From assembly GCA_002104945.1 (NCBI GenBank), contig MCFH01000066.1, positions 62,001-126,000 on the forward strand: DNA of 64,000 bases, written 5' to 3'. Of this stretch, positions 11,873-62,118 are shown piece by piece. The first letter of the stretch is position 1. Each line of letters begins with the position of its first letter. Below the pieces are notes generated by a model. It had not been told where the DNA came from. It searched no databases and saw only the letters and a list, made by a program, of their open reading frames with translations. The DNA is from Piromyces finnis finn. Taxonomy: Eukaryota; Fungi; Neocallimastigomycota. The position numbers and the translations under genes were made by a program.

Positions 11873-11886
11873 AAAAGGTCGTTCCA

Positions 11887-12431: not shown

Positions 12432-12463
12432 ATTTAAAGGGTTAGAAATTAATAATTAATTTT
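12432..12463 (+). promoter_or_regulatory. Conserved upstream motif of array gene 1
   Basis: atttaaagggttagaaattaataattaatttt is identical to 25136-25167 and one mismatch from 37246-37277. Confidence 0.55.
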
Positions 12464-12752
12464 TTTTTTGTAAATCATCCCCTTTAAACTTAAAAGGTAA
12501 AAGCACCTTAATTTTTCTTATTATTGATGTAATGTTTATATCAGAAGATAAGGTATAAGAATATTAAAAACAAGTTTATTTTTAATATTATATAGAAGAC
12601 AGTCTGATATGATAATTTAAAAAAGAATAAAAAATAACAACATTACCTTAAATAATAAAATTTTTAAAGTCATTTTGAATATCTTTATTATCCTAAAATA
12701 ATTAATAAATGTACATTTTTTAAATTATCCTTTAAAATAATAGTAATTCAAA

Positions 12753-15700
12753 ATGTTAATATCAAAAAGAATAAAATGGTAAGTATTATTTTTCTTAAAA
12801 AAAATAAAACATTTATATTATGTATATGTGATAAATAATTAACAAAACAAATATTTAATATAAATGATTTAAAAAAAGGTTGTCATTACAATATTTAGTT
12901 TTATTGTCCCTTTCAAAAAATGTACTTGGTCAAGATGGAGGTGGTGCTAATAATGCAGGTAATGATAAAATTTAATTAAAGAGTAATACTAGATAGTAGT
13001 ATTAGAATTAAATGATTTTTAATTATGGTTATAGTTTTAACAGCTTGTGGTGAAGGTGTTCCTGGTAGTTGCACGGGTTTAACTTCATCTGGTTATTGTT
13101 TAGAAGAAAGTAATATATATAAATTAAAAGCAGCAACTACTGTAGCAGATGCAGATGGCTCATGTAACCCAATCACAGGCGCTGCACTAAAACAATTTAA
13201 AGCTGATGGTAGTAGTGAGGTTACTATTTCTAATAATTCACTAGGTGTATTATATAAATGTGTTGCGGGTACTACTAATACAGATGATCCTTCAACGTGT
13301 ACTTAAATTGATGGAGGATATTATATGATTTTAGGAAAACAATTTTTATTTTTATGTACAGCATCGTCAACTCCAAAAAAGGGATATTACCTTTCTTCAA
13401 CAACAACAGATACAAAAAATAAATTATATAGTTATGTTGGTGATTCACCTTTTTTGAAAGCATTAACAACTGCAAATGATGGTTATTATCTAAGTGGTGA
13501 AGATTTTGAAAATAGTAGATATAATAATTTAATTAAATGTACATCAGAGAGTTGTATTAAATTAGAAGATGCAGAATTGAAATCAGGTTATTATTTGTGT
13601 GGCGAAGATTTTAAAAGTAATACATATAATAATTTAATTTATTGTGATTCTAATAAAAAATGTTCAAAGTTGGAAGGTCCTTCAAAATCCAGTTATTATG
13701 TTAGCAGGGAAGATTTTGACACAACTGGTTCATATTATAAAAAATTAATTAATTGAAATGAAAGTGAAAAATGTACTACTGCAGTTGAACCTACAGTTTT
13801 AGGTTTTTGCACAAATGGTGATGGAAAAACTGACACAGAGATAAAAAATTAATTGATTGTTCAACTGCTAATCAATGTAAAGAAGTGGATGAACCAAAAA
13901 AAGGTTATTATCTTCGTGGTGAATTAACATCATCAGATGACAAACCAATTTCATTGTTTGAATGTAAGGATAAATCTTGTACAGTGCAAAAACCTACTGG
14001 GGAAGGTCATTATTTAGATGCTTCTGGTATAGATGCTGGGGGAAAATACTCTAAATTAATTTTATGTAAACATGATGCTTCAAAAAAATGTGAATCTGCT
14101 GCTGTTGCTGCTGAAAGTATGCCTTACGATGTAGGTAATTATTACTTTTTAGATAGAAAGGATACTTCCAAGGTAATTAAGTGTACCTATAGTGATGACG
14201 GAAATAAATGCGAAGAAGTTGATGGTGAAAAAAAGGCAGGTTATGGTTATATAGATTTCGGAGCTAAAGGTAACGTAATTGCTTGTACTGAAGGTACATG
14301 TAAATCTTTGGAAAAGGTTAATGCGCAAGCTGAAGATGAAGAAAATAATATATTAGCACAGAACACGGGTTTTCTTGATACTAGTGAAGGTGAAAATACT
14401 TATAAAAATATAATTATATGTATTAATTTAGAATGAGGAGGCTGTACATCAATTCCAATTGATGGAGTTCAAGGACATGCTTTCTTAGATGGCACTAGTT
14501 ATTACTCAAATAGTAAGATATTTAAAAATGTCATAAAATGTATGGAATCTGGTGGTTGTACTCCTCTTGAATCAGTTCCATCGTATTCTACAGCTGAAGT
14601 ATATATTGATGCTGAAAGTGTTAGTTAAAGTGAAAAGTATGCTAATATTATTAAACCTGTAGTTTCAGGTACAACTACATTTTCAGTTGTAGAAGATAAT
14701 GACACTAATACTATGTACGCTTATATTGATGCTTCCGATAAGAAAAAAATTATTACCTGTGATGCTACAGAAAAGTGTAAGTCAGATGAAAATGGTGCAT
14801 CCTTTGCTGAAAAAGTTAAAGCTTTTTATATTAATGGGTTAATTCCAACAGAAATTATAGCTTGTGAAAAAGAGGATTCGGAATATAAAAGGATAGCAGG
14901 AAGTGAAGAAAAGGGTCAAACTAAATATTATGCTGATATAAAAACAAAAACTAATATAATAAAATGTGATTGGCCAAAAGATGGTGCATCACCTAATACA
15001 ATAAATTGTGTATCTGAAGCTCATGCTTCAAATAGCAGTGAAGAAAAATATTATTATATTGATGGATATGAAGATAAAAATATATTAGCATGTGATAAAA
15101 GTAATGGTTGTATTTCTTCAGAAAGCCTTGCTACTACTAGTCAACCATCCTATTATGTTGATGCTAATGAGAGTACTTCTAAATCAATTATTACTTGTAC
15201 TACTACGAAATGTACTTCTGAAGAAGGTGAAACCACTGAAGGAACTACTTACAAAGATTCACTGATGATAAAAAAGTTATGAATCAAAGAATGGAGTTAG
15301 CGATGATTGTGACACTTATATTGATGCCGGTGATTTATCCCAAATTTTAAATTGTAAAAGAGACGGTAGTTGTATTTATTTCAAAACAAAGCCATCATTC
15401 TATAATTCAGAATATTACGCTCGTTTATCTAATGGAGTAACAGCAATTATAGAATGTGATTATGATACTACCTCTGCTAAAAAAAGCATTTGTAAATTGG
15501 ATACAACAACAGCTTTTAAAACAAACTCAGTTTATAGAAATGCACTTTTTAATAAAGAAAATGGTGATTCCACCAACCCATTAATTATTTGTGACTCTTC
15601 TTCAAAGTGTACACCATCTAAAGCTAAGATTACAGGTAAAAGTAAGAGTTACTACATTAATTCTGACGTTAAAAGTGTTGAAAAAACTTTAAATAGTGAT

Positions 15701-18700
15701 AACCAACTTATTATTTGTAAAACCGATGAAGGATGTACTGAACAAAAAGCGAGTTCTAATGCTAATAATTTCCATTACTATGTTAATGCAGGAAGTACTT
15801 TTGAAACTTCCTTAAATGATACTTTTAATTGAATGCAAGGATACTTGTCAAGTTTTAAATACCGCTAAAGATAGTGATATTTATATAGATCAATTTGATT
15901 CTTCTCACACCATTCAATGCTATGAATCCAATGGTTGTAAATCTATTCCTAATCATGCTATTGATAAGAAGAATGAAATTTTTTTAAATTCAAGTCTTAA
16001 TAGTACTTCAAATGTTATATTAAAGATTTGATTAAATGTATCAACAAGAGTGTGATTACTTGTTCAGCAAAGGATGATGTTAAGGATGAAGTTTATAAAA
16101 ATTCTCATAACACAACTGAAATTATCTATTGTACATCAGAAAATGGATGTTAGAGTAAGACCAGTGGTGGTACCACACAACCGGAATATTAAGTTAATGC
16201 TGATCCAACTAATGTTGACAAATTAAATGGTGATTTAATAAAATGTAAGAATGATGGATCCAAAATAACATGTGAAGTCACCTACGGTAATGATGGAGAT
16301 ATCTTCCTTAATGCCAATTACGAAAATGATGCGGCCAAAAAGCCTTTGATTATATGTACTACTGAAAATGAATGTGCTACTAACGCTAGTAAGGCAGAAT
16401 CTAATTCAATTCCAGCTTACTACGTTAATGCTGGTAGTGTTCTTTCCTCTAAATTAAATGATACTCTGTTCCTTTGGTACAGCTGTTTAATATAATATTG
16501 AACTAACAGTTCAAAATATTTTTTATGATAATTCTGGTGAAAATGACGAAACTAATCCATTAATTAAATGTAATGCTAATGGCTGTAAGGTTAGCATTAG
16601 CTCTGCCACTGAAAAGAGTAAAGAATATTACATTAATGCAGGTGATGCGGATGAAAAACCACTTGCTAATGATATTATTGAATGTACTAGTAAAGAAAAT
16701 GTAATTCAATGTGAAGTATTAGAAAAGGCTGGAGAAGGTGTCTATGTCAAGTCCAACTATTCTGAAAATGGAGATGCCAAGCAATTAATTCAATGTCGTA
16801 AAGATACAGGATGTGCTGGTATCAAGACCTCACCATCCAATTCTGAATACTTTGTTAATGCTGAAGCTACCGATCTCAATAATGCCATTATTTTCTGTGC
16901 CAACAAAAAGTGTGAAAAACAAACACCAACTGGTGTTCCAACTTACTATGTTGGTAGTAATGGTGATAGTCAAGAGGATCAAGTCAATGGTTTAATTGAA
17001 TGTACAGAATCTGAACCAGCCGATGACGACACCTCACCCAGAAGAAAGAGAGCCACCGAAAAGAAATGTAAATTAAAGCCAGCTTTCACCTCCAATGGAT
17101 ACTACTTAAACAGTGGTTACAACAAGGCAGTTAATCAAACCATTCTTTGTGATTCTTCCGAAGGATGTGCCACTGAAAAGGTCATTCTTGGTTACTATGT
17201 CAATGCAGGTGATGCCACCAAACCAGTCATTAAATGTGAAAAGGAAGGTACAGAATGTGTTGAAGAAGAAAGCAAGGAATGTCCAAGTTCTTTTGATATT
17301 ATTCCAGGCAATTACTGTTACAGTGAAGGATCCTTAAAATTCTATCCATCTAGCAATTCCACAGCTATTTCTGCTTCTAAATCAGATGACATTTACACTT
17401 TTGCTACCATTCCAGCCAACGGTTTCCCAGGTATTAAATCTGAAACTGGAGCGTTATTCAAAATTTCTCGTTACTACATCAATCGTTTCTGCCAAAGTGG
17501 CGTTGTTATGATTGATAAGAATGGTAAATTAGTTGATAATTTATCAGCAGCTGATCAATCCGACATTAGTGTCTATGACTGTAATGATTCCACCAAGATG
17601 TGTACAGAACGTTCAGGATGTACCAGTAACACCTACATGTTTGATAGCGAAAACAAAAAGGCCGTTTTCTGTAATAACAATAAATTAGAATATGCCGAAT
17701 TCACTGGATATGTTGTTGATGGTAATCGTGCCGTTGGTACGAATCATCCATACATTATTCATTGTGAAAACAATGGTAGTAAATGTGAAAGTATCAAACC
17801 AAAAGTTTCCTCTTACTACGAAAACAATGGTTATGATTCCAGTGCCAATGGATTAATTGAATGCAGTGGTAATAACTGTATTACTGTTGGTGCCACTGTT
17901 GGATATTATGTTGGACATGAAGGTAAGGGTATTATTCAATGTACCTCTTCCACTTCATGTGTCTATGCCGATTCCAAGTCCAAGGTGAAGTATGTCAATG
18001 CTGGATCTAACAAATCCTCCAATGCCATCATTTCATGTACCAAGGATTCATGTGTCTCAACCAAGGCCAACACTGGTTACTATTTAACCTACACTAGTAC
18101 TCTTTTAATTCAATGTACTAATCCATCCAACTGTGTTGAATTCACACCATCTGTCAATTACTACGACAATGCTGATTCATCCGAAAGTAGCAATACCATC
18201 ATCAACTGTGTTCAAAACAGTCAAGTGATTACTTGTTCCACTGAAGCCACCAACAGTGGTTTCTACATTTCCAGTACACCAAATGTTTTAATTCGTTGTA
18301 AATCCGGCAACAAGTGTAAGACCGTCACAGTAAAGAATGGTATTTTCCGTGGAGCCATCAAGAGTAATACTTCAGGTTCAAAGCGTTCTGATGATGAAAA
18401 AGAAAGTCAAGTTGAAAGTTCAATTGAAAGTCAAATTGAAAGCGAAGTTGAAGTTGAAGGTAATGATGATGGAAAGAGTGTTGTTGTTCCAAGAGGATCC
18501 GATGATTCTGTAATGCTGACACAGAAAGAATAGATTAGGATATCTATTCTATTACAATAACACTAAATTTAAAATAAAATAAAAAATTGTTTTATTAAAA
18601 ATATCTTTTATTATAATAGAAATTTTATTAATAACAATTACATCGATAAAATGATGAAAAATATCTTCTATTTATATTTTTCCTAAATACATTTATATTA

Positions 18701-20909
18701 TATTATAACTATTTATTTCTTATATATTATTATTTAAAATCTACACTAAAATCTTAATTATTAATAAATATTTAAACTATAACTATTTTTAGTAAAATAC
18801 AATTGGCAATTCAAATTAAGTACTATTCAATTTGAATATGTGCCCATGTATTATTGATATATTAATCATTTATTATTTATCTATTTCTATAAAAAAACAA
18901 TACTAAAACTAGGGATTTAAATTGAGAATATTAATTTACTTGTTAAACATTAAAAATAAATTAATAATTTATTTTGTTTTAAACTTTAATTATTAATAAA
19001 TAAATTATGTCTCATTTTCTTTTTCTGAATATAATTTGTGTAACTTAAACAATAATACTTATGGCTTAAGTTACATTAAAGATATCAAGTTGAGGCGTTT
19101 GATATCTTTACAGATTCCTACGATATCATTCATTGTATTCAAGAAAAGTGTTCTGCCCTCTCCCCAAGCGAAGTCTCAGCCATTCCAATTTGTGAATTCA
19201 ACAACAACAAGTGTTACATCACCAATGAATATGCCATGACCAAGTCAGCCACCACTTCCATTTCAGCTGGTAGTATTTGTACCAACAATGATCGTTCCGT
19301 TTTCTACTTTGCTACCGATACTGTTGTTGTTAAGCCAAATGTTATTTCAGGTAGTACTACCACTTACATCTACACCACCACCAATTCCAACTGTTTAGAA
19401 GTCAATGATTCGTACAGTGACATGTACTTTACCGTTGGTTCGAACATCTACCTTTTAGATCAAGGTAGTGTTTTACAATTCTATGAACAAGGATACTATT
19501 TCATCAACACAGCCAAGAATGCCATTGTTGGTGGTAGTGATATTGACAATTACAATGACAAGAATGTCAAGCTCTACAGATGTAATGGTAGTAGTTGTAG
19601 CATTTTAGATAAACCCGATTCCTTAACTTTCTATGCCGATGTCAACAAACGTATTCTTAGATACAATGTCAACAGTGGTTCTTACTCTTTTGCCTATGAA
19701 AAGGACATCATTTGTATTTTTGCCAATAACAAGTGTACACCTAATGCTGATTTAAAGAATCAAGAATTCTGTATTACATACAAGGGAGAATTAGCTCTTG
19801 CCGAGGCAGATATCAAGAACCGTGAAACCGGAGAATGTTACAAGGCCAGTAGTCTTAGTTCCACCATCTATGGTTATTCTCAATCCTTATATTCCATGAA
19901 TTTATATTCAGCTGAAATGATTGATGAAACCGGCTATTACATTGTTAGTCTTTCCACCAACACCAACGTCGTCAGTAAGAACTACAAGACCAAGAATAAC
20001 AAACTTGTCATCTATGGTTGTCAACTCTCTTCCTGTAAGGAAATTGAACCAGAAGAATATGCCTATTACTATGATTCACGTGCCAAGACCATTCTTCGTT
20101 ACAAGGATGGTGCCTGGAAGACACCAGAAACATCTGGTTATGCCTACATCTCGATTGATCCCGTCAACACCTACATCTACAGATTCACCAAGATCAATGA
20201 TGAAGTCAAGATCAATGGTATTGCCAACTACGGCTACTACTACACGGTTGATGGAGAAATGTACAACTGTAATCAAGATGAAGGAGGTGCCTGTACTCCA
20301 GTCAACAACACCGGCTACTACTTTACCAATGCTGGTGAGGTTTACTACTGTGTCCATGATTCCGAAAACTTGGAACCAACCGAATGTACCAAGCAAGCTT
20401 GTATTAGTGGACAATACTATTACATTGATGAAGCCTACTACAGATGTGAAAGTAGTTCCAGTCTTGTTCCAGTGATGTCTCGTTACTGTTCGTACAATGA
20501 AAATGTCATCATCAACTTCCCATTAGCCTTGACCGAAGAATACCCAGATAAGATTAAGCAAGCAGTTGAAGGTATTGAAAAGAACAACAATTCCACAGCC
20601 ATTATTAGACGTAGTGGAAAGAATTATTTAGAATCTGTTTCCGGTATTTTCACCAACTGTACCTACAATGTTGAAGAAACCAAGTCCACATTTGATTTAG
20701 TTTGTGTCAACAACTTTGTCAAGGTTGATGAAGAAACGGATGATGTCAAGATTTGTTCCATTGAAAAACTTAGCTATGTTGAATGTACCGAAGAAGAAGA
20801 AAATCCCGAAAAATGTAATGTTAGTTTTGGTATTTCCAGAGCTTCTCTTTCCATTCCTAGTTTAGTAATATCTACTCTACTTGTTGTAATAATCAATGAA
20901 TGTAATTAA
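12753..20909 (+). pseudogene. Array gene 1: scaffoldin-like Cys-repeat surface protein pseudogene
   Basis: Exons 12753-12778, 12879-12958 and 13035 onward give signal peptide MLISKRIKWLSLQYLVLLSLSKNVLG. There are at least 6 nonsense codons (13304, 13754, 14434, 14626, ~16150, ~16190) and 4 frameshifts (~13840, ~15255, ~15825, ~16020), plus a solo LTR at 18509-19112. The 3' half is nearly identical to genes 2-4. Confidence 0.9.
18509..19112. mobile_element. Solo LTR (604 bp) with 5-bp target-site duplication
   Basis: TGTAA...TTACA termini and GATTC duplicated at 18504-18508 and 19113-19117. Removing it restores gatgattcctacgatatc as in the three paralogs. Confidence 0.93.
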
Positions 20910-23900
20910 ATTACGTTGTTTCAGGTAACAATGTATAAATACAAATACAATATTTGAAATCAAAATATTTCTTTTAAGAAATATATGTTAAATCATCAAA
21001 AACGTTAATTCATATCAAATATTATAAATTATTTATTTATAAAAATTTTACTCATTCATACTTAAAATTCGCAATACTTCATCATTTATAATCAAAAGTC
21101 ATATTTAATTCATATGTTAATTTTTAATATATAAAAATTAGCATTGCTCAATCTTCAATTTTCAATTATACTCAATTCATCTCATAATGAATTAAAATAT
21201 ATTTTAATTGGTTTAATTATATAAAATAACTCAAAAAATTATTTTAATTTTAAATCAAAAAAAAAAAAAAACTATTGATTAAATCAATTTTATAAATTAT
21301 AATTTATAAATTATTATTCATATTTAAAACAAAGTAGTAATTATTATTATAATTATTAATCATTATTTTATCAAATGATCAATATTCAAAATTTTCATTG
21401 AACTATTCATAGATGAAAATATATTTTTAAATATATTTTTAAATAATTTTTACATTCATAATAATATTATATATTTATTTTAATAAATATCAATTATTAT
21501 TCATTTATTATTATTATTATTATTATTATTATAATAATAGTTATTTTTTAAAAAAAAATATGTTAATATTTTTAACATTATTCAATTATTTAAATTTCAT
21601 ATCATAAATATCTGACAATTATAAGTAATTGTAAAAATCATATCTATTCATTGATAAATGATAAATTTGAATTTATCTATCTATTATTACAAAATACATA
21701 AATAAAAAAGAACTTTTTCATTAAATAAAATTAATAGTATTATTTATAATTAATACTTTTTAAAAAATATACATTTATTCAATAGTTAAAGTATGGAAAA
21801 ATTATAAAATAACTAGAAAAAAATATTAATGTTTAAAAGTTTAGTATTAATAGACTTTTAACACAATACATACACAAAAGAAAGTATTATTTTTTATATT
21901 CAATTTATTCAATTATTTAAAAAGTTTAATATTGCAGCATTTTAAATACTTTCTATTAGCATCCTTAAAACTTTCTTTAAGCACTTATTTTTTTTTACCT
22001 GTAAATTTTGCTATTAAATAAATAATAAAAAAAGTATTTAAATTTTTTTTTATTTTAATCCATCTTATATATATACATTTAATATTTAAAAATATAATAA
22101 ATAAATATATTCAATTTTACTTTTTTTTTCATTAATATCTATTATTATACGATTTTTTTTTAAAAAAATAATGCAAAAAACTATTTATATTTAATCAGTA
22201 AAAATATAATTTTATTTTATATTTATTTTATTTAAGAATATTAAATTATTAAAAGATATCCTTAAAAATATAAAATTTTGTATTTTAATTTTTGTTATGA
22301 TAACTTTTAAATATTTCAAAGCAAATATAATTGATGATGTATTTACTTACATTGGAAATATATTACTATTATATATATATATTTTATCTTTTTTTATTTT
22401 TATTAATAGTCTAAAAGTCCATTTTTATAATTTATCATGTGATTATTACATATACATTGATTTATGATTACATGTAATTAATTTATGATTTTAATTTTAA
22501 AAATTTAAAATGAATTATTAAATATCAGTTCATATATATTACAAATGTATACTAATAAATGATAAATAAATTAAAAATATAATAGAAAGTTTATTTATTA
22601 ATATCTTATTAATTAAAATTAATCAATATTAAATTAAATAATAAACCATTTATTTTACCATTGATTACATAATATAATAATTGTATATATTAAATATTAA
22701 AAATATTAATTAAATTCCAATTCTTTCATATATTAAAAAATGTTGAAAATTTAAAAAAAAATTGGAAACAAAAATTTTTCTCAAACAAAAAAATTTTTTT
22801 TTTTTTTGGGGGGGGGGGGGAGTTTAAATTTCTCCAAGTTTAAAAGATTTTTGAAACTTTTTTTATTCGAAAATTTTGGTAAAAAAAATTTTTTTTTATT
22901 TTTTGGATCTAAAACTTAACCCTTTGAATTGAATTTTTTTATTAGAAAAAAATTTGGAAAAAAAAAAAAAAAAAGAATTATTATTACTGTTATTATTATT
23001 TTTTATGGTTTACTTTTTTGATATTATTTGGCTATTAGTCATGAGTAATAGTATTTCTCAAAAGTACGATAATCAAGGTAATGATTTTTCATTATATATT
23101 AAAATTTATTGTAAGTGTAATATTATTTTTTTTAATATTTTTTAATATTTATTATATCTATTCTTTCATTATATAAAAAAGTATTGTTGCTATCAGTAAA
23201 ACCATTTTATAATGGTTATCTTGAAAATTGTATCTTTATATAAAATTAAATAATTATAATAAAAATATAATAAATGCAATATCCATTTAAACATAAAAAA
23301 TAAGTAAATAGAGGAAATGCTGTTTAAAAACTTTTAAAAATTATATGTTTTTTTTTCTAACTATAAAAATAGTTTATATTTTAGATGCTATAATAAACCG
23401 TTTAAAAAGCAATAACATAATTATATATCTTTATGTATTTTATATTTTTTTTAGTGTATAAATAAAAATTAGTATTTTACTTTCATATTTAGTTTTTTAA
23501 AATCTAGTAATACCATATTGTTAAATGAGATAAATATAATGAAAAAAAAATTAACCGATAAGCGATAATTGTTTTTACTATGATTAGTAATTATATATAA
23601 TAATTTTATAAACTGTAAAACAAAAAGATTCAAAATAAAAGTTACTATATGGAAAAGGTAAAAACCCATAAATGTTGGAGGAAAGTAATTTTTTATTATT
23701 AACAAAATAAAAGAATAATGTTCAATGATACGAATAAAGTTAAAAAGTTTATTATTTAAAAGCTATAAAATATTAGATGAATAGATTTTTTTAGAGTAAT
23801 AAAGTAAGTGATATAACCATTAATTTTTATAATACTAGATTTTTCATTATTTTTTATTCAAATATTTTATTATAGGAATATTTTTTTTCATGTATAAATA

Positions 23901-25135
23901 CAATATAAAAGTTAAAGGTACACAAAATAATAAATGTTTTATTCTACAATTAATAAATATTATTTTATGTTTTTTTTTTATTTGATTGAATATCTAATAT
24001 TTTTTTAATATAAATCAGAAAATATATTATAAAAATAAACATTTTAACAAAGATTTATTTCTCAAATTATTTAATGCATTATTCAAATGTGAAGCGGTAA
24101 TAATTCATAGTAAAAGTTTTTTTTTTTTGAAAATAATGATGAATTTGTAAAAAAAAAAATTTGAATAAATGGTCCCACCTTTTATATAATAAATTTTATA
24201 ATATTTTTATTGTTAAATTACTCATAATTTCTGTTCTCTTTTTTTTCTTTTTTTTTTATATAGTGTTTTTAACTTTTTTGCATATTCTTCGTATTGAAAA
24301 TAAATTTAAAAGGTTCATTTTCTTGTTTAACATATATAATAATATTTATTAATATTTAATATTATAATTAAAAAGATAGTGTCGACTAAAATTACATTAA
24401 TCCTTAGTAATTCTAAAAATAGCAATTTAAAAAATACTCTCTCTTTATATTTTGTATTAAAAAAGATAGTTAAATATTTTAAATTTGTTTACTATTGTTA
24501 TTTACAAAAATAAAATGATTTATTTTTCTCATATTTATTTATTTAAAAAAAAATAGTAATAAAACAAGTAACAAAGTAACAAAATAGTTGTTTGAATATT
24601 GTTTATACTAATATCACTATTATTATCTTTATACCAGTAATAATACCATTCTTTTTTTTTTTTTTCAATTGTCTAATTATACAACCCTATTTATTTTTCA
24701 AGGCAATTTTGTTTTTTAGTTTATTCATAAAAATATAATATTTAATAGAGATATATATATTTTTAATATTCTGTTGAAGATAAATAATAAATGATTAATA
24801 ATAACTAAAAAGAATAAATAAAGAATATTAATAATAAAATAATTACGTAGAAATAAAAACTTTATATATTTTTATTATAATTTCAATTTTTTTTTTTTTA
24901 TAATATTTTACTAAAAAAGTTTATTTATTATTAAAATTTTAATTTTTCCTTTAAAGATTCTTTTTTTTTTTTTTTTTTTTGATTTTTTCCCTCCGAATTT
25001 TAAATTTTTACTTTTTCTCTATTCGATAATTGCCGTAATTTTAAACTTTTAAAATATTTTTTGTATAAATTTCAAAACGCGATCTCAAATTTTATAGGTT
25101 TTAAAAAATAAAAAGAAAATAAAAAATCTTTTTTA

Positions 25136-25167
25136 ATTTAAAGGGTTAGAAATTAATAATTAATTTT
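25136..25167 (+). promoter_or_regulatory. Conserved upstream motif of array gene 2
   Basis: Same 32-mer as 12432-12463, followed by ccctttaaacttaaaag as in gene 1. Confidence 0.55.
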
Positions 25168-25483
25168 CTTTTACCTTCCCTTTAAACTTAAAAGAAAAGG
25201 TAAACATAGTTCTTTTATTTCGTGCTTTATTATAATATAGTATTATGAATTGAAGCTTGTATCAATTTTAAGAGTAGGCATAATAATAACTAAATTTTAA
25301 TATATATTTTATATTTTATATCTTTGGTAATAGTATTTAATCAAGAAAACGAAAATAAATATTATTAAAAATTGAATAAATTTATTTATTCTTTTATTGA
25401 AGAATAAAATATTGATTAGAAGAAATATCAATGTTTATTTAATTTTAATAACATTTATAATACTAAAAATAATTAAATAGAAA

Positions 25484-37245: not shown

Positions 37246-37277
37246 ATTTAAAGGGTTAAAAATTAATAATTAATTTT
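37246..37277 (+). promoter_or_regulatory. Conserved upstream motif of array gene 3
   Basis: atttaaagggttaaaaattaataattaatttt, one mismatch to the gene 1 and gene 2 motif. Confidence 0.5.
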
Positions 37278-37810
37278 TAATTTCTTTTTTTTTTTTTTCA
37301 TTTTGTTGGTAAGTTTTTTTTTTTTTTTTTTTTTAATAATTCTGGTTATATTTTATTATTTTTTATAATAAAAGTAAAAATTAAAGTTTTAGAAAAAAAA
37401 TGGTTTAAAACTTTTTTTAAAAATTAGTTGTAAATATCAATGTAAAAAAAAATAAATAAAAAGATGATAGATAATAATAAATATTATTACTACAAATGTA
37501 GTAATAAAATTGAAAAGACTTGTTTGAATATTTGATGCTTTTATCTTTCAAAAAAAAAATAAAATTATATGATTTAATAATTATACTAAAACTATTTAAT
37601 TTTTTTTTCCTTTTAGATTTCTAAAGAATATTAAATTCTAAAGAAATAATAAAAAAAAATAAATATTATTAAAAATTGAATAAATTCCATTATTCTTTTC
37701 TATTTTTAGAAAAAGAATAACTATAATACCTAGAGGAGGGAAAAAAATAATACTCAATGTTTATTTAATTTTAATAATATTTATATATTCCTATAAAATA
37801 AATATAGAAA

Positions 37811-45817: not shown

Positions 45818-48800
45818 ATTACGTTGTAATATCAGTAAACAATGTACAATATATAAATACAATATGAAATATTAAAATATTTCATTCAACTATAAATTAT
45901 TCAATACAATTTATAATTCAATCATAAATATATATATCATAAATATAAACAATTCACTCAATTATATCTGTAATCAATTTACATATTTTTTTTTACAAAT
46001 ATATTTTCTTAAAGAAAACAAATTCAATATTTAAAAAAATATCATTTTATTATTTGTAATTAAAACAACTATAAAATATCAATACTTTTTCAATTAATAG
46101 TTTTAATTATTATTAATAATTAAAAAAAAGAATAAATCCAATATTAAATCAATGAAGTAATAAGGAATTGAAATTTATTTTAATTCTTTAAACATTAAAA
46201 TAATTTGTTTTATCAGTAACTCTGCTGATAATAAAGAAAAATATATAAGAATTAAATAATTTAATTTTATACTATCGTTATTCAAAAATTATTTTATAAA
46301 TTATAATTTATAAAAAATAGAAATATTCATAAATACGAAAACATTATAATTACAATCGTACAACATTTCATAAATATCTTTTCATTTAAATTAATGTTAA
46401 AATAATGAATTATTTAAAAATGATTTTAAAATGAGTTTTTAAATAATTTTTTATTTTACTTTTTAATTGAAGCATTTCAATTATATATTTAAAATACCCT
46501 ATAAATACCAAAATTATATTTTGTATTTAAAAAAAAAAAAAAGAAAGTTGACATTATTAAAAAAAAAATGAAAATTATATTTTCATTTAAAAGTAATTAG
46601 TTATAATGAATAACTTTTTTTTTTTTTTGATCATTTTCAAATCATAAATATCAATTTTTATTTATTCATCATTTTAATGATTTTTTTTTAACGAAATTCA
46701 CAACACAAATATTCAAATTATTTTCTATCTATTGTTATTTTTTTTATAAAAAAAATAATAAAAAAACATCATTATTTCATAATTATTCAATATATAAAAG
46801 CATTTTATATAAAAAATAAAAATATAAAAAAATATAAAAAAAAATATTATAATTTAATAGTCATAAATATATTTTAAAATGTGTTTTTTATTTATTTTTT
46901 TTATTTTATTTTAATACAAGAACAAGATAAATATTAAAATATTTATTATAAAACAAAAAAAAAAAAAAACAATTTTAAAAAATATATTTAAATTTTTTTT
47001 TTTTTTTTATTTTGTTAGATTTATGGAGGGAGGGAAAACTAAAAATATTTAAATTTTATTTATATAAAACACAAAAATTAAAGTTTTTTTTTTTTTTTTT
47101 AATTTTTAAAATGTGGAAACGGTCAATTTTTTTCTCGCGTGTTAAAGTAAAAAATTAACCATAAAAAGTTTTCTTTTTTTTAATGAATTTAAAAAAATAT
47201 AAAAAAAAATTAAAGAAATATTATTTAAAAAAAAAAAAAAAAAAAAAAAAAGAAAATTCAACATTTTAAATAAATAATAAAAAGATTTTTAAATTATTTT
47301 ATTAATGGGATATATATCATCATTTAAATAATAAAAAGTCAAAAAAAAAAAAAAAAAAAAAAAAAAGGAATAATTATTAAAAATTGAAATGAAATATAAA
47401 AAAAAAAAACTAATTTGTAATTTTATCATTTTTTATTCCAATTTAAATAGTATAAAAAAAAAGTATTAATAAAAAAAAACGCTATTATTTATTATATTAA
47501 TTTTATTTTATTTTTTTTTATTTTTAATTTTTAAGAGAGGACATCTTTTACAAATTTAACTTCAATTTAAAAGTACTAAATTATTATTTGAAATAGATTA
47601 TTAAATACCCTTTTATACTGACAATAAAATAAAGTTATGATAAGTAATACTCTATGAATTTTAATTGTTACTATTTTGAAAACTAATTGATCCTATTTTG
47701 AATAATGAACTCCAAATTTTTTTTTAAATAAAGTACTTATTATGTAGTTCCTCTATCTATCCTTAGTAGTATTTTGTTTTATTTTTTAAAAAAAAATATC
47801 ATATTATTATTACATATATTTATTTTTATTATTCCTTTTATTATTATAAATAGTTTTATATTTTTTATTGATTAAATGGGAATGTCCTTTACTTTATATA
47901 TATTATAAATAAATATTATGTTTTTTTTTTTTTACTTTATTTTTTATTAAAAAAAAAAAAATATCGACGATATCCTTTTAATACAAATAATAATAACAAA
48001 TATTTATATAATTTTTTTTATTATAACCTATCATAAGAATAATAAATAATAGAAAGTGATATTATTTCAAAATTTTATATAAATAAAATACTCTTAAGAT
48101 TATATAATGATTGTTTCATACATAGATTTATATGAATTAAAAAAAAAAAAGTTATTACAATTTTTTAAATTTCATCCACATTATCAAAATGGATCATCCA
48201 TATTTTCAAATGAAAGATTAATTCTATGTTATTTCTATTAAAAAAAAAACACTTTTTTTTTTCTATAGCTTTAAAAATAATTAAAATAATGAATTATTAT
48301 ATTATAAAAACAAAAGAAAAAAAATATTGAAAAATAAAAAAAAGAAATAGACCCAATTGATTAAAGTTTAATAAATAGAGGTAGAAGAAAGAAAAACAAA
48401 ACCATTTTATTTTATTATTTAAATATTATTTATTTATTTTATTATTTATTTATTTATTTATTTATTTAAATACTATTTAATAATAATAATAATTAAAAAA
48501 TAATTTTTTTTTATTGGTAAATTCTTTTTTTTTTTTATTTAATAATTTAAAAAAAAAATAAAAAATTTTTATTATTAATTAAAGTTTTGAAAATTAAAAA
48601 AAATTTTTTTTAAAAAAAAAAACTCAGCAAAAAAAGAAAAAAAAAAAGAGCCTAACCCAATTATTACAGTTAAAGGGAAAAAAAGCGTTTTACTAGCAAC
48701 AAACATAGTAAAAATAAAAAAAGAGATAATTTTTATTACATAAAAAAATAGTTAAGAAAACAAGAATTGGAGGAATAAATAATATTTTAAAAAAAATAAT

Positions 48801-49340
48801 AAAATTAAAAAAAAAAAAAAAAAGAAATTTATTTTTTTTATAATTCAAAAAAATTTCAATTCATTTTGAATCTATTCCAATATATTTGTATCATATATTA
48901 ATTTAAATTAAATTTATTTTTTTAAAATTATTTAAAAACAAAAAAAAAGTCCAAAAAAAAAAAATAAAAACATTTTTGGTAAAAAAAAGAAAAAATAAAA
49001 ATTCTTTTTTTTTTATTTATTTTTAAAAAAAAATATAATTTTTTTTTTATTTAAATAAAAGATAGAATTTTATTTTTTTTTCTAAATTTCTTTAAATATA
49101 ATTTAGTAAAGGAAAAAGAAAAAAAGAAAGAGAGAAATAAAATATTTTTAAAGAAATAAACCAAGAAAAAAAATTATCTTTATTTTATTAATAATAAATG
49201 CCAGAATTTTTATTTTAATAAAAATTTTGGAAGATTCACAAAAAAAAAAAAAAAAACTTTTTAAAATAAAGAAAATAAAATAATCATCGTTGATTTTTTA
49301 TAATTTTCTAAAGTTTATTAAATAATTTTTAATAACAAAA

Positions 49341-52300
49341 ATGTTTCCGAAACTAAAAAGGTAAAAAAAAAATATTAAGAATAAAATAATAATAAGAATA
49401 TAGTTTTATTTTTTAAATAATAATTAAAAAAAAAATTATATTTTTAATATGTAAAATTTAATTATATTTAATATTAATTTAAATTTAACTATTTATAAAA
49501 ATTTAAATATTTCAATTTCATGTATTTTATAGGATACCATTAACATTATTAACATTAGCATCCCTTATAAAAGTTATTTCAGCGACTTCTGAAACTGGTA
49601 AATTTTTTTATTTTAAAATTAAATATAAAAAAAAAATAAATTATTAAAATTTTATTGATATATAATTTTAGAATTAAAAACTTGTGATAATAATTTATCA
49701 ATACCTGATAGTCCCCAATCATGTTCAGGAACACTTTCTGGTAAATTCTGTATAAAAGATTCTGTAATCTATGGAAGTTCAACTAGTGTTTGTAAACTTA
49801 CCACTGATGGTGATTATCTTTTTAAAGATGATGGAGAAACATTAATTACATCAGTATCATCTGGAACAAAAGGTTTATTATATACTATTTCAAGCGAAGA
49901 AGCCGAGCAAACTACAGAAAATAATATACTAGTTACAATTAGTAATAAAAACTATTTATTTGTATGTGATTCTGAATCTAAAATATGTACAGAATCTTCT
50001 AAAGAAGGATATTATTTAACAGGAGACAGTGGAAGTTCCGCTAAATTATACTACTGTGACAGTAGTAAAGCTTGTAGTACAAAAACTGGTTTATTAGACG
50101 GTTTTTACCCTAAAGGACCTATTGTAAATAGTGGTTATACTAGTTTAATCCAATGTTCTTCTACAAAATGTGAAGAACTAGAAGAAGTTCAAGCAGATAG
50201 TTTCTATCCTTGTGGTACTGGTGCTGTATCTGGTACACCAATTAAATATAAAAAATTGTTATCTTGTTCAGGTTCAGACACTGTTACATGCTCTGAATTA
50301 GCTACAAATAATATTGGATATTATTTAAATGGTAATGGTTATAGTGAAGGTTTTATTAGTTTAATTTATTGTTCTTCAGCAACTGAATGTACTGAATTTT
50401 CCAAGGGAAAAAAAAATGCTTTTTATATTAATGCAAAAAAGGCATCTGAAGTAATCGGTTATAATGGTACTAAATTTTCAAGTGCAGCTGGTGTAACCAC
50501 TGCTGGTAGTGCTTATATTGATGGTGGAAGTATTCCTGATGGTGAAGAAGCAGAAGCAGCAAATGTAATTAGTTGTGTTGGTGGTACCTGTATATCTATA
50601 CCTAAAGGTAATGCCAGTACCGATTTAAGTACAGGTTTTTTGAATGCTAATGAAGAAGATACAGATAATGAAATTATTCTTTGTAATGGAACATCATGTG
50701 TTGGAGATCCAGGACCAAATGATGCTGGACAAGCTGTTGTTGATGGTAGTAATTTAAATAGTCTTATTATTTATGATGGAACTGATATTGTAAGTCTACC
50801 AACTCCAAGTACATTAGATGGTCATGTTTATATTGATTATGCAAGCGGAACTGAAGAAGTATTTAAAAATATTATTCGTTGTGAAAGTACTGGATGTACT
50901 GTTTCTGCTGGTGTTGACGGATCAGAAACTGGTCAAGCTTACATTGATGCTATAACTAATGCAAACATTATTAAATGTACAGATGCCGATGGTTGTACAT
51001 CAGCTGAAAACGAAACTGAAGGTTCTGCCTATATTGATGCCTTAAAATCTTCCAATGTTATTTTATGTAATGAATCAGCATGCACTTCCTCTGAAGGTAT
51101 ATCCACTCCTGGTTACGGTTATTTAGATAAAGCTACAGAAGGAAATATTATTGTCTGTAAATCAGCTAATAATGTTACAACTTGTTCATCTATTGCCAAT
51201 GGTGGATCTGAAACTAGTCCAGTAGGATTCATTGATGCCAGTGTTAATGATGGAAAAACAATTATTGTTTGTAGCGGTGCAGAAGATAGTCCCTGTACTT
51301 CTTCTGAGACTGAAGTAACCCAAGGTCAAGCTTTTATTGATGGTACAAGTATTGTTGGTGAAACCTTTACTAATGTTATTGTTGCCGATGCTACAGCTGG
51401 TACTTTCTCTGCCTTAGCTGCCGCTGATAAGAAACCAAATACCACTCCAGGTTACGTTTACATTGATGCAAGTATTGAAGGTGCCGCTAATGTTATTCAA
51501 TGTACACTTGAAGGTTCAGCTGTCACTTGTACTTCAGCCGCAAATGAAGCTGTAGCAGGATTTGGATATCTTGATGCTACAGAAGAAGAAGAACACAAGA
51601 ATGTAATTCAATGTACTGAAGGTTGTAAATCCGAAGCAAATACTGCTGAAGAAGCAACCGAAGAAAAAGCTCCACAAAACGAATTTTTAATTAATGCCAG
51701 TGATAAAAAAAATATTATTGTATGTACTTCATCTGAAGGATGTTCCACCATTGTAGGTAATAGTGATACCACCGGTAATAAGTATTATCCATATAGTGTA
51801 ACAAATGAAAATATCATTAAATGTGAACATAATGCAGAATGTGCAACAGATAATCATGCTGGAGCTGACGGCAAAGCCTACTATATTAACGGATATGAAG
51901 ACAAGTATGTTTTAGCTTGTGATACCACTGATGGTTGTGTCACTTCATTTAATCTTGCCACTGCTGATCAACCATCCTATTATGTTGATTCTAGCGCTGA
52001 CAACCAACCATTAATTATTACCTGTACACCAGATAAATGTACTTCTGGACCAGGTTCTACCTTGGAAGGTACCGCTTACAAAGATCCAATTGACGCTAAA
52101 AATGTTATTATTTGTGAATCTGAAACTGCCGCTTGTACTGCTCCTGCCGCTGGTGCCGGTGATAGCGCAGATACTTACATTGATGCTGGTGATCTTTCCC
52201 AAATTATTAGCTGTAACGATACTGCCTGTAGTTACATTGCCACTAAGCCAGTTGCCTTTAATTCCGAATATTATGCCCGTTTTGCTGAGGGTGTTGCCGA

Positions 52301-55300
52301 AATTATTGAATGTGATTTTAATACCACTTCCACCAAAAAAAGTATCTGTAAATTAGATACTGAAACTGCCGTCCAACCCAACGCCGTATTCAGAAATGCT
52401 CTTTTCGGAAAAGAAAATGGTGATGCCACCAATCCATTAATTATTTGTGATAATGAAAGTAAATGTGCTCCATCCACCGTCACTGTTTCTGAATTTGGAA
52501 AGAGTTACTACATTAATTCCGATGTTCAAAGTGTCAATAAAACTTTAAATAACGATATTATTGAATGTACCGAAGAAAGTAAAGAATGTACCTTGATGAA
52601 CGGTTCCAATACCAGTGTTTACTTGAATGCTAATTTCGATGCTGATAATAATCCAAATCAATTAATTATTTGTAGAACCAATGGAGGATGTCTAGAACAA
52701 AAAGCCAATTCTACTGCTGACGATTTACATTACTTTGTTAATGCTGGTAGTGTTGTCAAGACCGCCTTAAATGAAACTTTAATTGAATGTAACGAGAGTA
52801 CCTGTGAAATTTTGACCACCGTCGAAGACAGTAATATTTTCATTGATCAATTCGACACATCCCATACCATTCAATGTTATCAAGCACAAGGTTGTAAATC
52901 CACTCCTAGCCGTGCTACCGATAAAAAGAATGAAATTTTCTTAAATTCCAGTGATCTTGTCAATTCCGAAGATCCATTAACTAAAGATTTAATTAAATGT
53001 GTCAACACTGAAGGTACCATTACTTGTTCTGCTATGGATGGTGCTGCCGATGAAGTCTACGTCAATGCTCATAACAACACTGAAATTATTTACTGTACCG
53101 ACGAAGATGGTTGTAAGAGTAAGGCTAGTGGTGCCACTGCCACTCAACCAGAATATTATGTTAATGCCGATCCAACCGATGTTGAAAAGTTAAACGGTGA
53201 TTTAATTAAATGTAAGAGTGATGGATCTAAAGTCATTTGTGAAGTTACCTATGGTAATGATGGTGATGTCTTCCTTAATGCCAACTATGAAAACGACTCT
53301 GCTAAAAAGCCATTGATTATGTGTTCCGCAGAAAGTGGATGTGCTACCGATGCCAGTAAGACTACCGATAAGTTACTTCCAGCTTACTACGTTAATGCCG
53401 GTAGCGTTCTTTCCTCCAAATTAAATGACACTCTTATTCAATGTACCTATGAAACTAATGCTGAATGTAGTATTAAAGTTGCTCTTCAAAATGAAGTTTA
53501 CGTCAACTCTGCCAACAACACCGTCACCAATCCATTAATTAAATGTAATGCTAATGGTTGTAAGGTTAGTATTAGTTCAGCCACTGAAAAGAGTAAGGAA
53601 TACTATGTCAATGCTGGTGATGGTAATGAAAAGCCACTTGAAGCTGATATCATTGAATGTGTCAGTGGTGAAGAAGGTATTGAATGTTCCGTATTAGAAA
53701 AAGCCAATGAAGGTGTCTATGTCAATTCCAATTACTCTGAAAATGGAGATGCCAAGCAATTAATTCAATGTCGTAAAGATACAGGATGTGCTGGTATCAA
53801 GACCTCACCATCTAATTCTGAATACTTTGTTAATGCTGAAGCTACCGATCTCAACAATGCCATTATTTTCTGTGCCAACAAAAAGTGTGAAAAACAAACA
53901 CCAACTGGTGTTCCAACTTACTATGTTGGTAGTAATGGTGATAGTCAAGAGGATCAAGTCAATGGTTTAATTGAATGTACAGAATCTGAACCAGCCGATG
54001 ACACCCCATCCAGAAGAAAGAGAGCCACCGAAAAGAAATGTAAATTAAAGCCAGCCTTCACTTCCAATGGCTACTACTTAAACAGTGGTTACAACAAGTC
54101 CGTTAATCAAACCATTCTTTGTGATTCTTCCGAAGGATGTGCCACTGAAAAGGTCATTCTTGGTTACTATGTCAATGCAGGTGATGCCACCAAACCAGTC
54201 ATTAAATGTGAAAAGGAAGGTACAGAATGTGTTGAAGAAGAAAGCAAGGAATGTCCAAGTTCTTTTGATATTATTCCAGGCAATTACTGTTACAGTGAAG
54301 GATCCTTAAAATTCTATCCATCTAGCAATTCCACAGCTATTTCTGCTTCTAAATCGGATGACATTTACACTTTTGCTACCATTCCAGCCAATGGTTTCCC
54401 AGGTATTAAATCTGAAACTGGAGCGTTATTCAAGATTTCTCGTTACTACATCAATCGTTTCTACCAAAGTGGCGTTGTTATGATTGATAAGAATGGTAAA
54501 TTAGTTGATAATTTATCAGCAGCTGATCAATCTGACATTAGTGTCTATGACTGTAATGATTCCACCAAGATGTGTACAGAACGTTCAGGATGTACTAGTA
54601 ACACCTACATGTTTGATAGCGAAAACAAAAAGGCCGTTTTCTGTAATAACAATAAATTAGAATATGCCGAATTCACTGGATATGTTGTTGATGGTAATCG
54701 TGCCGTTGGTACGAATCATCCATACATTATTCATTGTGAAAACAATGGTAGTAAATGTGAAAGTATCAAACCAAAGGTTTCCTCCTACTACGAAAACAAT
54801 GGTTATGATTCCAGTGCCAATGGATTAATTGAATGCAGTGGTAATAACTGTATCACTGTTGGTGCCACTGTTGGATATTATGTTGGACATGAAGGTAAGG
54901 GTATTATTCAATGTACCTCTTCCACTTCATGTGTCTATGCCGATTCCAAGTCCAAGGTGAAGTATGTCAATGCAGGATCTAACAAATCCTCCAATGCCAT
55001 CATTTCATGTACCAAGGATTCCTGTGTCTCCACTAAGGCCAACACTGGATACTATTTAACCTACACTAGTACTCTTTTAATTCAATGTACTAATCCATCC
55101 AACTGTGTAGAATTCACACCATCTGTCAATTACTACGACAATGCTGATTCATCCGAAAGTAGCAATACCATCATCAATTGTGTTCAAAACAGTCAAGTCA
55201 TTACCTGTTCCACTGAAGCCACCAACAGTGGTTTCTACATTTCCAGCACACCAAATGTTTTAATTCGTTGTAAATCCGGCAACAAGTGTAAGACGGTCAC

Positions 55301-57260
55301 GGTAAAGAATGGTATTTTCCGTGGAGCCATCAAGAGTAATACTTCAGGTTCAAAGCGTTCTGATGATGAAAAAGAAAGCCAAGTTGAAAGTCAAATTGAA
55401 AGTGACATTGAAGTTGAAGGTAATGATGATGGAAAGAGTGTTGTTATTCCAAGAGGATCCGATGATTCCTACGATATCATTCGTTGTATTCAAGAAAAGT
55501 GTTCCGCTCTTTCGCCAAGCGAAGTTTCTGCCATTCCAATTTGTGAATTCAACAACAACAAATGTTACATCACCAATGAATATGCCATGACCAAGTCAGC
55601 CACCACTTCCATTTCAGCTGGTAGTATTTGTACCAACAATGATCGTTCCGTTTTCTACTTTGCTACCGATACTGTTGTTGTTAAGCCAAATGTTATTTCA
55701 GGTAGTACCACCACTTACATCTACACCACCACCAATTCCAACTGTTTAGAAGTCAATGATTCGTACAGTGACATGTACTTTACCGTTGGTTCGAACATCT
55801 ACCTTTTAGATCAAGGTAGTGTTTTGCAATTCTATGAACAAGGATACTATTTCATCAACACAGCCAAGAATGCCATTGTTGGTGGTAGTGATATTGACAA
55901 TTACAATGACAAGAATGTCAAGCTCTACAGATGTAATGGTAGTAGTTGTAGCATTTTAGATAAACCCGATTCCTTAACTTTCTATGCCGATGTCAACAAA
56001 CGTATTCTTAGATACAATGTCAACAGTGGTTCTTACTCTTTTGCCTATGAAAAGGACATCATTTGTATTTTCGCTAATAACAAGTGTACACCAAATGCCG
56101 ATTTAAAGAATCAAGAATTCTGTATTACATACAAGGGAGAATTAGCTCTTGCCAAGGCAGATATCAAGAACCGTGAAACCGGAGAATGTTACAAGGCCAG
56201 TAGTCTTAGTTCCACCATCTATGGTTATTCTCAATCCTTATATTCCATGAATTTATATTCAGCTGAAATGATTGATGAAACCGGCTATTACATTGTTAGT
56301 CTTTCCACCAACACCACCGTCGTCAGTAAGAACTACAAGACCAAGAATAACAAGCTTGTCATCTATGGTTGTCAACTCTCTTCCTGTAAGGAAATTGAAC
56401 CAGAGGAAGATACCTATTACTATGATTCACGTGCCAAGACCATTCTTCGTTACAAGGATGGTGCCTGGAAGACACCAGAAACATCTGGTTATGCCTACAT
56501 CTCGATTGATCCCGTCAACACCTACATCTACAGATTCACCAAGATCAATGATGAAGTCAAGATCAATGGTATTGCCAACTATGGTTACTACTACACGGTT
56601 GATGGAGAAATGTACAACTGTAATCAAGATGAAGGAGGTGCCTGTACCCCAATCAACAACACTGGCTACTACTTTACCAATGCTGGTGAGGTTTACTACT
56701 GTGTCCATGATTCCGAAAACTTGGAACCAACCGAATGTACCAAGCAAGCCTGTATTAGTGGACAATACTATTACATTGATGAAGCCTACTACAGATGTGA
56801 AAGTAGTTCCAGTCTTGTTCCAGTGATGTCTCGTTACTGTTCGTACAATGAAAATGTCATTATCAACTTCCCATTAGCCTTGACCGAAGAATACCCAGAC
56901 AAGATTAAACAAGCAGTTGAAGGTATTGAAAAGAACAACAATTCCACAGCCATTATTAGACGTAGTGGTAAGAATTATTTAGAATCTGTTTCCGGTATTT
57001 TCACCAACTGTACCTACAATGTTGAAGAAACCAAGTCCACATTTGATTTAGTTTGTGTCAACAACTTTGTCAAGGTGGATGAAGAAACGGATGATGTCAA
57101 GATTTGTTCCATTGAAAAGCTCGGTTATGTTGAATGTACCGAAGAAGAAGAAAATCCCGAAAAATGTAATGTTAGTTTTGGTATTTCCAGAGCTTCTCTT
57201 TCCATTCTTAGTGTAGTTTTAACTACTGTCATTGTAGTATTATTTAATGAACGTCATTAA
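49341..57260 (+). CDS. Array gene 4: secreted, C-terminally anchored Cys-repeat scaffoldin-like protein, 2557 aa
   Basis: Exons 49341-49360, 49533-49597 and 49672-57260 (total 7674 nt). Signal peptide MFPKLKRIPLTLLTLASLIKVISA. The frame is open from 49674 into ORF 50256. Confidence 0.88.

Positions 57261-62060: not shown

Positions 62061-62118
<58 letters not shown>

Follow-up and report, generated by a model that had tools for sequence, protein, structure and literature searches.

Scaffoldins of anaerobic fungi are large, repeat-rich proteins without homology to the parts of bacterial cellulosomes, and the family covers a wide range of sizes, with and without membrane anchors (PMC8262932). 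For the binding of a ScaA fragment to a fungal dockerin, a KD of 994 nM is reported; which element of the scaffoldin acts like a cohesin has yet to be identified, and anti-ScaA localisation failed (PMC8262932). A ScaA tree built from 319 proteins is also available (PMC10978972). Here we describe an array of scaffoldin genes in a 64,000-nucleotide stretch of the genome of Piromyces finnis finn (Neocallimastigomycota; assembly GCA_002104945.1, contig MCFH01000066.1, positions 62,001–126,000 of the forward strand), hereafter the window, whose numbering is used throughout. The four units of the array, c1 to c4, combine very different 5′ regions with 3′ regions that are nearly the same. This layout very probably reflects partial concerted evolution of a ScaA-family array by recurrent interlocus gene conversion, which is itself probably GC-biased.

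A homology search returned the public proteins P0001–P0003 at 96–99% identity, with E-values from 0 down to 1e-226 overall, and the named scaffoldins of Anaeromyces robustus, Neocallimastix californiae, Neocallimastix sp. ‘constans’ and Piromyces sp. E2 at 40–75%. Homology and architecture together place the genes among the anaerobic-fungal scaffoldins and point to the ScaA family, the assignment to ScaA rather than ScaB or ScaC being provisional. A first-pass annotation of the window had called them secreted, repeat-rich, C-terminally anchored fungal scaffoldins, and the public names and the architecture agree. They share with the ScaA-family scaffoldins of Haitjema et al. (2017), as restated in PMC8262932, a signal peptide, cysteine repeats, a hydrophobic C-terminal anchor and a lack of likeness to Pfam families or cohesins. 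They differ in size, the present products having predicted masses of 257–276 kDa and the conserved large scaffoldins being given as ‘>500 kDa’ (PMC8262932). By analogy with that literature, the putative role of the products is that of a surface-anchored, dockerin-binding scaffold.

Bacterial cohesin-type scaffoldins were considered as a class for these genes and rejected, no cohesin, dockerin or CBM3 module being detected in the 2373-aa open reading frame (ORF) at a Pfam E ≤ 1, or in the Protein Data Bank (PDB) at E ≤ 0.1. A Pfam scan of this ORF and of two tip pieces found no family, only chance matches at E > 0.1, and a sequence search of the PDB returned nothing at E ≤ 0.1.

Partial concerted evolution is exemplified by the FLO adhesin family of yeast and the ALS adhesin family of Candida. 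Spider silk spidroin genes also contain homogenised blocks under concerted evolution, as described in the available excerpts of two reports (PMC9779670, PMC5348893). As far as those excerpts extend, the spidroin-type cases and the present array have in common that copies within a genome resemble one another more than they resemble their orthologues, that low synonymous divergence (dS) is confined to the part under exchange, that sites form a mosaic, that the flanks are unhomogenised and that the proteins are very large, repeat-rich and secreted or surface-exposed. The scaffoldin array differs in that its putatively converted block comprises the membrane-proximal 3′ half together with part of the repeat array, and in that its unconverted part consists of N-terminal types common to several genera. 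An unusually steep within-gene gradient of GC at third codon positions (GC3) and an extremely AT-rich host set it further apart.

Variant surface antigen systems with silent donors, such as Trypanosoma VSG, Plasmodium var, Anaplasma msp2 and Borrelia vlsE, form a second group for comparison. As at the present locus, their paralogs vary at the exposed end and are conserved at the anchored one, the array includes a pseudogene, and gene conversion operates. In the scaffoldins, however, conversion would strike the constant part, the variable parts are apparently old and shared between taxa, the copies number only four, and there is no sign of tip exchange. The first-pass annotation had drawn this analogy and suggested that it might serve to evade host or viral recognition; nothing beyond the layout speaks in favour of it, and we know of no immune pressure on a rumen fungus. 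It also knew of no earlier account of the phenomenon in fungal scaffoldins, in agreement with a full-text literature search (excluding Haitjema et al. 2017) that found nothing connecting gene conversion, concerted evolution or tandem arrays with this protein family. Both the family and the process are known; the literature searched gave no account of the two together.

The array consists of four plus-strand units arranged head to tail with a period of 11.4–13.1 kb (Table 1), and its extent, c1 start codon to c4 stop codon, is exactly the interval first delimited for it, 12753–57260. All four genes are built from two signal-peptide mini-exons followed by one giant exon of 7.0–7.6 kb. The first mini-exon opens with the ATG and contributes a short basic peptide whose last residues are K-R or K-W, and the second encodes the hydrophobic core of the signal peptide. 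Four paralogs had been reported, and four units are indeed present, but c1 is a pseudogene and only three are intact. The spliced product of c2 is free of stop codons and matches P0002 exactly across the whole of exon 3, that of c3 is open with GT..AG introns, and that of c4 is P0001; the products of c2–c4 have a pI of about 4.5–4.75. Public annotation names P0001, P0002 and P0003 ‘scaffoldin [Piromyces finnis]’ and places all three on one contig of 269,528 bp. The window is extremely AT-rich, with 28–38% GC in its coding parts and the much lower values listed in Table 1 in its spacers. The spacers cannot be aligned with one another except for one block of ~160–180 nt, 76% identical, shared by c2 (25352–25512) and c3 (37656–37836). 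This block lies directly upstream of exon 1 and includes it, and may represent a common promoter and 5′ untranslated region.

Along the genes, divergence falls into three zones, referred to here as the divergent tip, the intermediate zone and the homogenised or constant zone (Table 1). Pairwise DNA identity was taken from a four-way MAFFT alignment, and dS and non-synonymous divergence (dN) were calculated by the Nei–Gojobori method in 100-codon windows. In the tips, protein identity between copies is 17–39% and the Cys-pair units are kept, consistent with the original description of N-terminal regions that retain only a repeat skeleton. Over the first third of the genes, dS (0.7–1.4) and dN (0.6–1.2) are both saturated and alignment is poor. 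Through the intermediate zone, identity increases toward the 3′ end, and the closest pair of copies switches between windows.

The constant zone (~3.9 kb, ~1300 codons) shows 97.1–97.8% DNA identity among c2–c4, with c2 at 97.7–97.8% to c3 and c4, and 94.9–95.7% identity to c1. In c1 this zone is interrupted by an insertion, and it is 95–99% identical to c2–c4 from about 16967 onward (300-nt windows). Copies differ at 87–199 positions in 3.9 kb, and these leftover differences are nearly all silent. Over the last ~1300 codons dS is 0.02–0.27 and dN 0–0.018; over the last 1200 codons the values within the array are 0.08–0.12 and 0.007, with dN/dS about 0.07. Past the stop codon, identity between copies is 53–77% over the first 150 nt and about 55% further on. 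These sliding identity and dS windows confirm the proposal of a 3′ part homogenised at silent sites and a very divergent 5′ part. The phrase ‘almost identical even at silent sites’ holds relative to the rest of the gene and not literally, given the dS that is left.

The same last 1200 codons, compared with scaffoldins of a related fungus on the metagenome contig L001, give a dS of 0.78–1.02 and a dN of 0.13. The 3′ silent sites are therefore free to change, and codon constraint is not the cause of their identity within the array. The 5′ dS, together with spacers and 3′ flanks that cannot be aligned, indicates that the units are old and that no whole unit was recently duplicated. Between species, both gene halves are equally old, since dS between c3 and the foreign protein P0008 is roughly uniform along the whole gene (0.4–1.5, mostly near 1). 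We regard it as barely credible that purifying selection alone, codon use included, has kept old paralogs alike without exchange. The constant-zone dN/dS would suit such selection, as would the C-terminal ~600 aa, the best-conserved part of the protein between species at 80–90% amino-acid identity. Between species, however, the same codons that are so alike within the array have a dS of 0.8–1.0 and encode only 74–90% identical residues.

Site patterns within the constant zone bear on the same question. Its 142 biallelic sites include three mutually incompatible 2:2 partitions, at 12, 10 and 10 sites. Neighbouring sites have the same pattern in 61 cases, compared with an expected 26.4 ± 4.4, a number reached in 0 of 10000 shuffles. 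Variants private to a single copy occur in runs, and the longest identical runs measure 179–515 nt. Judged from these patterns, the constant zone is a mosaic of short, evidently exchanged tracts, the pseudogene c1 included. The incompatible partitions and the clustering need exchange, which selection without exchange leaves unexplained. The same holds for c1, which has the constant zone alone in common with the live copies and shares its identity despite relaxed constraint.

Trees built from the two ends of the protein conflict. C-terminal trees (last 1100 aa) group strictly by genome, with separate clades for P. finnis, for the metagenome proteins P0005–P0008, for five A. robustus copies and for the Neocallimastix sets; the P. 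finnis clade has a stem of 0.17–0.23 and terminal branches under 0.03. The tree of an N-terminal block (c3 residues 300–650) instead pairs c3 with P0008, P0007 with P0011 and P0005 with P0010. Monophyly of P. finnis is rejected for this block by the approximately unbiased (AU) test, and the C-terminal block rejects the N-terminal pairings (p = 1e-68, 1e-6 and 1e-4). Window-wise BLAST gives the same picture: over the first 400–600 residues, a foreign protein beats the own paralogs in every copy. The best foreign tip relatives are P0053, P0119 and P0010 for c2, P0006 for c4 and, for pieces of c1, P0010 in collinear order, and the tip of c3 is 61% identical to P0008 as against 41% to its best own paralog. 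Past the tips, the own paralogs come out on top at 96–100%, compared with 62–90% for foreign proteins. Because the tips have closer relatives in foreign genomes, their divergence would be older than the split of these fungi, and they appear to be old retained types that cross genera. Strain-level tip relatives were absent from 5.8 billion proteins, among which the c4 tip had no non-self relative closer than 35% identity.

The tips had originally been read as hypervariable and diversifying, and a variable distal end on a constant anchored base would also arise if the units had been duplicated in tandem recently and positive selection had then diversified the exposed tips very fast. The presence of a silent, broken copy in the array fits such a history, as does the cross-genome comparison of c3 with P0008, in which dN is 0.4–0.76 in the tip versus 0.06–0.2 in the base and one poorly aligned window has a dN/dS of 1.17. 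We nevertheless consider this history improbable. Elsewhere in the c3 tip dN/dS is mostly 0.2–0.7, silent sites of the tips are as saturated as replacement sites, the spacers and flanks cannot be aligned, and every tip is closer to a foreign relative than to its own array. The pattern is due to the base being homogenised and not to fast change in the tips. One consequence is that whole-protein or C-terminal scaffoldin trees, such as the 319-protein ScaA tree (PMC10978972), would group by species and hide the older N-terminal types, so that scaffoldin orthology is better called on the N-terminal part.

Base composition changes along each gene in parallel with homogenisation. GC3 rises from 0.04–0.14 in the tips to 0.22–0.45 in the homogenised zone (in c2, from 0.08–0.14 at the 5′ end to 0.22–0.45), and GC at first and second codon positions stays flat at 0.36–0.48. 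The gradient is present in the other fungus too, where the inverted gene for P0007 has both a shorter homogenised zone and a later GC3 rise. In a genome this rich in AT, such a gradient fits GC-biased gene conversion, which may be its source. To our knowledge, Neocallimastigomycota have genomes of about 20% GC, and no sexual cycle has been described for them. Active gene conversion with a GC3 footprint would mean that homologous recombination shapes genes even in extremely AT-rich fungi. Across 25746–32743, 38478–45814 and 49672–57257, the climb in GC3 is four- to five-fold (about 0.1 to 0.45), and contigs L001 and L004 behave likewise.

In the mechanism proposed here, non-allelic gene conversion would recur among the units over their 3′ ~3.9–4.5 kb, in tracts of roughly 10^2–10^3 nt, and would hold this zone at 95–98% identity, silent sites included. 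The repair pathway we infer is double-strand-break repair from a sister copy. A GC bias of conversion is probable and would account for the raised GC3. The 5′ 1.6–2.2 kb of each gene would represent a distinct, old N-terminal type that has remained unconverted, and the intermediate zone would be where conversion tracts run out. The tips presumably escape because they are too diverged to pair, because selection holds the types apart, or for both reasons.

Assembly of long near-identical repeats is difficult, and the 3′ near-identity might in principle have been created by collapsed mapping or consensus polishing. The assembly does hold at least one artefactual contig from the same locus, L003 (MCFH01000164.1, 22,422 bp). 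This contig is a palindrome, of which positions 1–6818 match window positions 40987–47831 at 99.3% and positions 6783–14829 match the same region inverted, at 98.8%. It probably arose as a hairpin artefact of long reads and duplicates c3 (window 39702–47831). Even so, an assembly or polishing origin of the near-identity is highly improbable. The differences that persist between copies are structured and mostly synonymous, and at each of the 303 variable sites of c2–c4 the two arms of the separately assembled L003 have the c3 allele; L003 also reproduces the 3′ flank of c3. The same gradient recurs in three other independent assemblies and in the metagenome contig, and the GC3 gradient is intrinsic to each sequence. 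The protein P0004 (‘partial hypothetical protein’), considered as a fifth copy, was rejected as such; it is encoded by the palindromic L003.

Homogenised C-termini on divergent N-termini are also found in other anaerobic fungi. Paralogs in A. robustus, in Neocallimastix and in the metagenome are 92–100% identical over their last ~1000–1400 residues and 15–60% identical in their N-termini. On L001, a head-to-tail scaffoldin pair has a dS of 0.106 over the last 1200 codons, and a third, inverted gene stands at 0.37–0.39. At least two scaffoldin genes lie in tandem in N. lanati. The A. robustus copies are on different contigs, and one of them, on L006 (MCFG01000149.1), lacks a neighbouring scaffoldin for 10 kb in both directions, on which account a universal tandem arrangement was rejected. 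Going by these sequence comparisons, partial homogenisation is a property of the scaffoldin subfamily that extends beyond the present locus, and the tandem layout would not be strictly needed for it. Since the copy on L006 is isolated, homogenisation there would have to work between dispersed loci. A further related protein, P0058 (3056 aa, 58% identical in the C-terminal region), is filed under a metagenome-assembled genome of Methanosphaera stadtmanae; almost certainly, a contig from an anaerobic fungus was binned into this archaeal genome by mistake.

Several points count against gene conversion in this array, or against particular parts of that account. The locus is represented by one assembly, in which some homogenisation by polishing is possible, and L003 was built from the same reads. 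Rejection of P. finnis monophyly in the N-terminal block is of moderate strength only (AU p = 0.017), repeat regions align poorly, and the foreign comparators are mostly metagenome proteins from unnamed source organisms. Concerning GC bias, private changes in the constant zone, unpolarised and without a close outgroup, comprise 52 strong-to-weak and 46 weak-to-strong changes, a balance that fits a GC equilibrium near 0.35 without being proof of biased conversion. The GC3 gradient could also be the product of codon-use selection in the conserved part. Finally, the isolated A. robustus copy implies that tandem adjacency is unneeded, and the array layout’s own role is thus left doubtful.

A more far-reaching idea, which we rate as unlikely, is that the homogenised 3′ block is a maintained recombination platform for swapping N-terminal ‘specificity cassettes’ between live and silent copies, and between dispersed loci in Anaeromyces. 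If this were true, a clonal, apparently asexual fungus could change the tips it displays, and the cross-genus N-terminal types would correspond to classes of dockerin or substrate binding. In a weaker version, the GC3 gradient would be the first footprint of GC-biased recombinational repair in the phylum. Under partial concerted evolution as such, the division between tip and base suggests the hypothesis that binding specificity resides in the tips and anchoring or assembly in the base. Antibodies or probes directed at the constant part would hit all paralogs and tip fragments would be copy-specific, which bears on the failed anti-ScaA localisation (PMC8262932).

Table 1. Features of the scaffoldin array, in window coordinates; each gene ends with its stop codon.
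Feature	Position	Strand	Description
c1	12753–20909 (exons 12753–12778, 12879–12958, 13035–20909)	+	scaffoldin pseudogene
c2	25484–32746 (exons 25484–25509, 25593–25663, 25746–32746)	+	intact, 2365 aa, 257 kDa
c3	37811–45817 (exons 37811–37833, 38297–38355, 38478–45817)	+	intact, 2473 aa, 268 kDa
c4	49341–57260 (exons 49341–49360, 49533–49597, 49672–57260)	+	intact, 2557 aa, 276 kDa
Divergent tip	c1 13035–15050; c2 25746–27360; c3 38478–40431; c4 49672–51878	+	DNA identity 49–56%
Intermediate zone	c1 ~15050–16666; c2 27361–28824; c3 40432–41886; c4 51879–53341	+	DNA identity 74–85%
Homogenised (constant) zone	c1 16667–20909; c2 28825–32746; c3 41887–45817; c4 53342–57260	+	
Spacers	20910–25483; 32747–37810; 45818–49340		3.5–5.1 kb, 12–17% GC
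c1 insertion	18509–19112		604 nt, 16% GC, TG start, CA end, solo-LTR-like

The first unit, c1, is a pseudogene, given its stops, frame changes and insertion. In-frame stops lie just past 13303, 14433 and 14625, and relative to the sister copies c1 has specific changes of −99 (in-frame) at 15700, +1 at 15823, −4 at 16020, −8 at 16466 and +609 at 18504; the +1 change falls within a run of T and might be a sequencing error. All small lesions are 5′ of 16510, and the constant zone is open over 680 + 609 codons. Private codon changes in that zone number 12 non-synonymous to 21 synonymous in c1, compared with 11 to 66 in c2–c4 together (Fisher p = 0.019), a difference that indicates relaxed constraint on c1. 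The public model of c1, P0003 (2203 aa), bridges the lesions by means of 12 introns, only the first two of which are present in the sister genes. The other ten were rejected as real introns: they are exonic in c2–c4, have coding-like GC and include the −4 and −8 deletions as well as nonsense codons. The public data include an annotated ‘scaffoldin’ that is a pseudogene rescued by ten artificial introns and a 22-kb contig that is a palindromic artefact.

The insertion that interrupts the constant zone of c1 is confined to this copy, c2–c4 being without it. It is flanked by a 5-bp duplication, GATTC, at 18504–18508 and 19113–19117, which together with its TG..CA ends is the signature of a solo long terminal repeat (LTR). 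No further copies of it were found within the window, only weak AT-rich matches.

At the protein level, each copy carries 44–50 Cys-pair units of about 30–40 aa, spread through the variable and constant zones, and cysteine makes up 4.9–5.0% of residues. The constant zone holds about 15–20 of these beta-repeat units. The Cys, Ile, Tyr and Asn columns of the repeat are invariant in 38 homologues. The division into tip and stalk is no structural boundary between different kinds of domain, the same Cys-pair units occurring in both zones. All four copies begin with an N-terminal signal, short and basic at first, then hydrophobic (judged by eye from exons 1 and 2). The repeats are followed in order by a Thr/Gln-rich linker, an acidic disordered linker, a C-terminal region of ~570 aa and a hydrophobic anchor. 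In every copy, the C-terminus consists of about 16–20 hydrophobic residues and then four polar ones, a putative membrane anchor of the transmembrane or glycosylphosphatidylinositol (GPI) type. Within the Thr/Gln-rich linker, a dibasic RRKR stands at exon-3 residues 1251 of c2, 1360 of c3 and 1447 of c4 (about 29500, 42560 and 54010). A site of this type (RRKR, KKKR, KRKR or similar) is found in the majority of close homologues but missing from several, and might serve for Kex2-type processing, which would split the protein.

Structure prediction points to long runs of beta-structure. For seven constant-zone units, AlphaFold2 gives an all-beta model with about three strands per unit (pLDDT 93, pTM 0.88), and a Foldseek-type fold search with this internal repeat model found nothing in the PDB at E ≤ 0.001, with TM-scores of 0.08–0.17. 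The C-terminal ~610 aa (c3 exon-3 residues 1790–2400, 43847–45679) were modelled at a pLDDT of 77.5. With this model, Foldseek matches beta-hairpin repeat solenoids at E-values of 5e-7 to 4e-4, with a probability of up to 0.97 and TM-scores of 0.09–0.25. The matches are the CROPs domains of large clostridial toxins, pneumococcal choline-binding modules (CbpF, LytB) and the glucan-binding repeats of GtfD. In the models, the scaffoldin region has in common with these repeats long beta-hairpin runs, and several of the known repeats bind carbohydrate, which hints that the constant base may bind a cell-wall or plant glycan. It differs from them in lacking sequence similarity, and the scaffoldin units are of the disulfide-type Cys-pair kind. 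The resemblance to CROP and choline-binding solenoids thus appears to be one of architecture only and not of membership. Membership among the cell-wall-binding or CROP repeats was rejected, with no match to Pfam CW_binding_1 and TM-scores that are only those just given.

The DNA upstream of the array holds retroelement remains. Two LINE-like ORFs, at 347–2531 and 4247–7617 on the plus strand, bear endonuclease and reverse-transcriptase motifs, as judged by eye from their translations, and the second is split by a frameshift. Between these fragments are direct repeats of about 615 nt, 96% identical, at 2861–3474 and 3793–4411. An ORF at 8415–11105 on the minus strand was assigned by eye to the gag-protease of an LTR retrotransposon. 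Downstream of c4, the gene-free region contains AT-rich tandem repeats (periods 50–94) and an (AAT)39 microsatellite, at 61203–61571 and 62039–62156.

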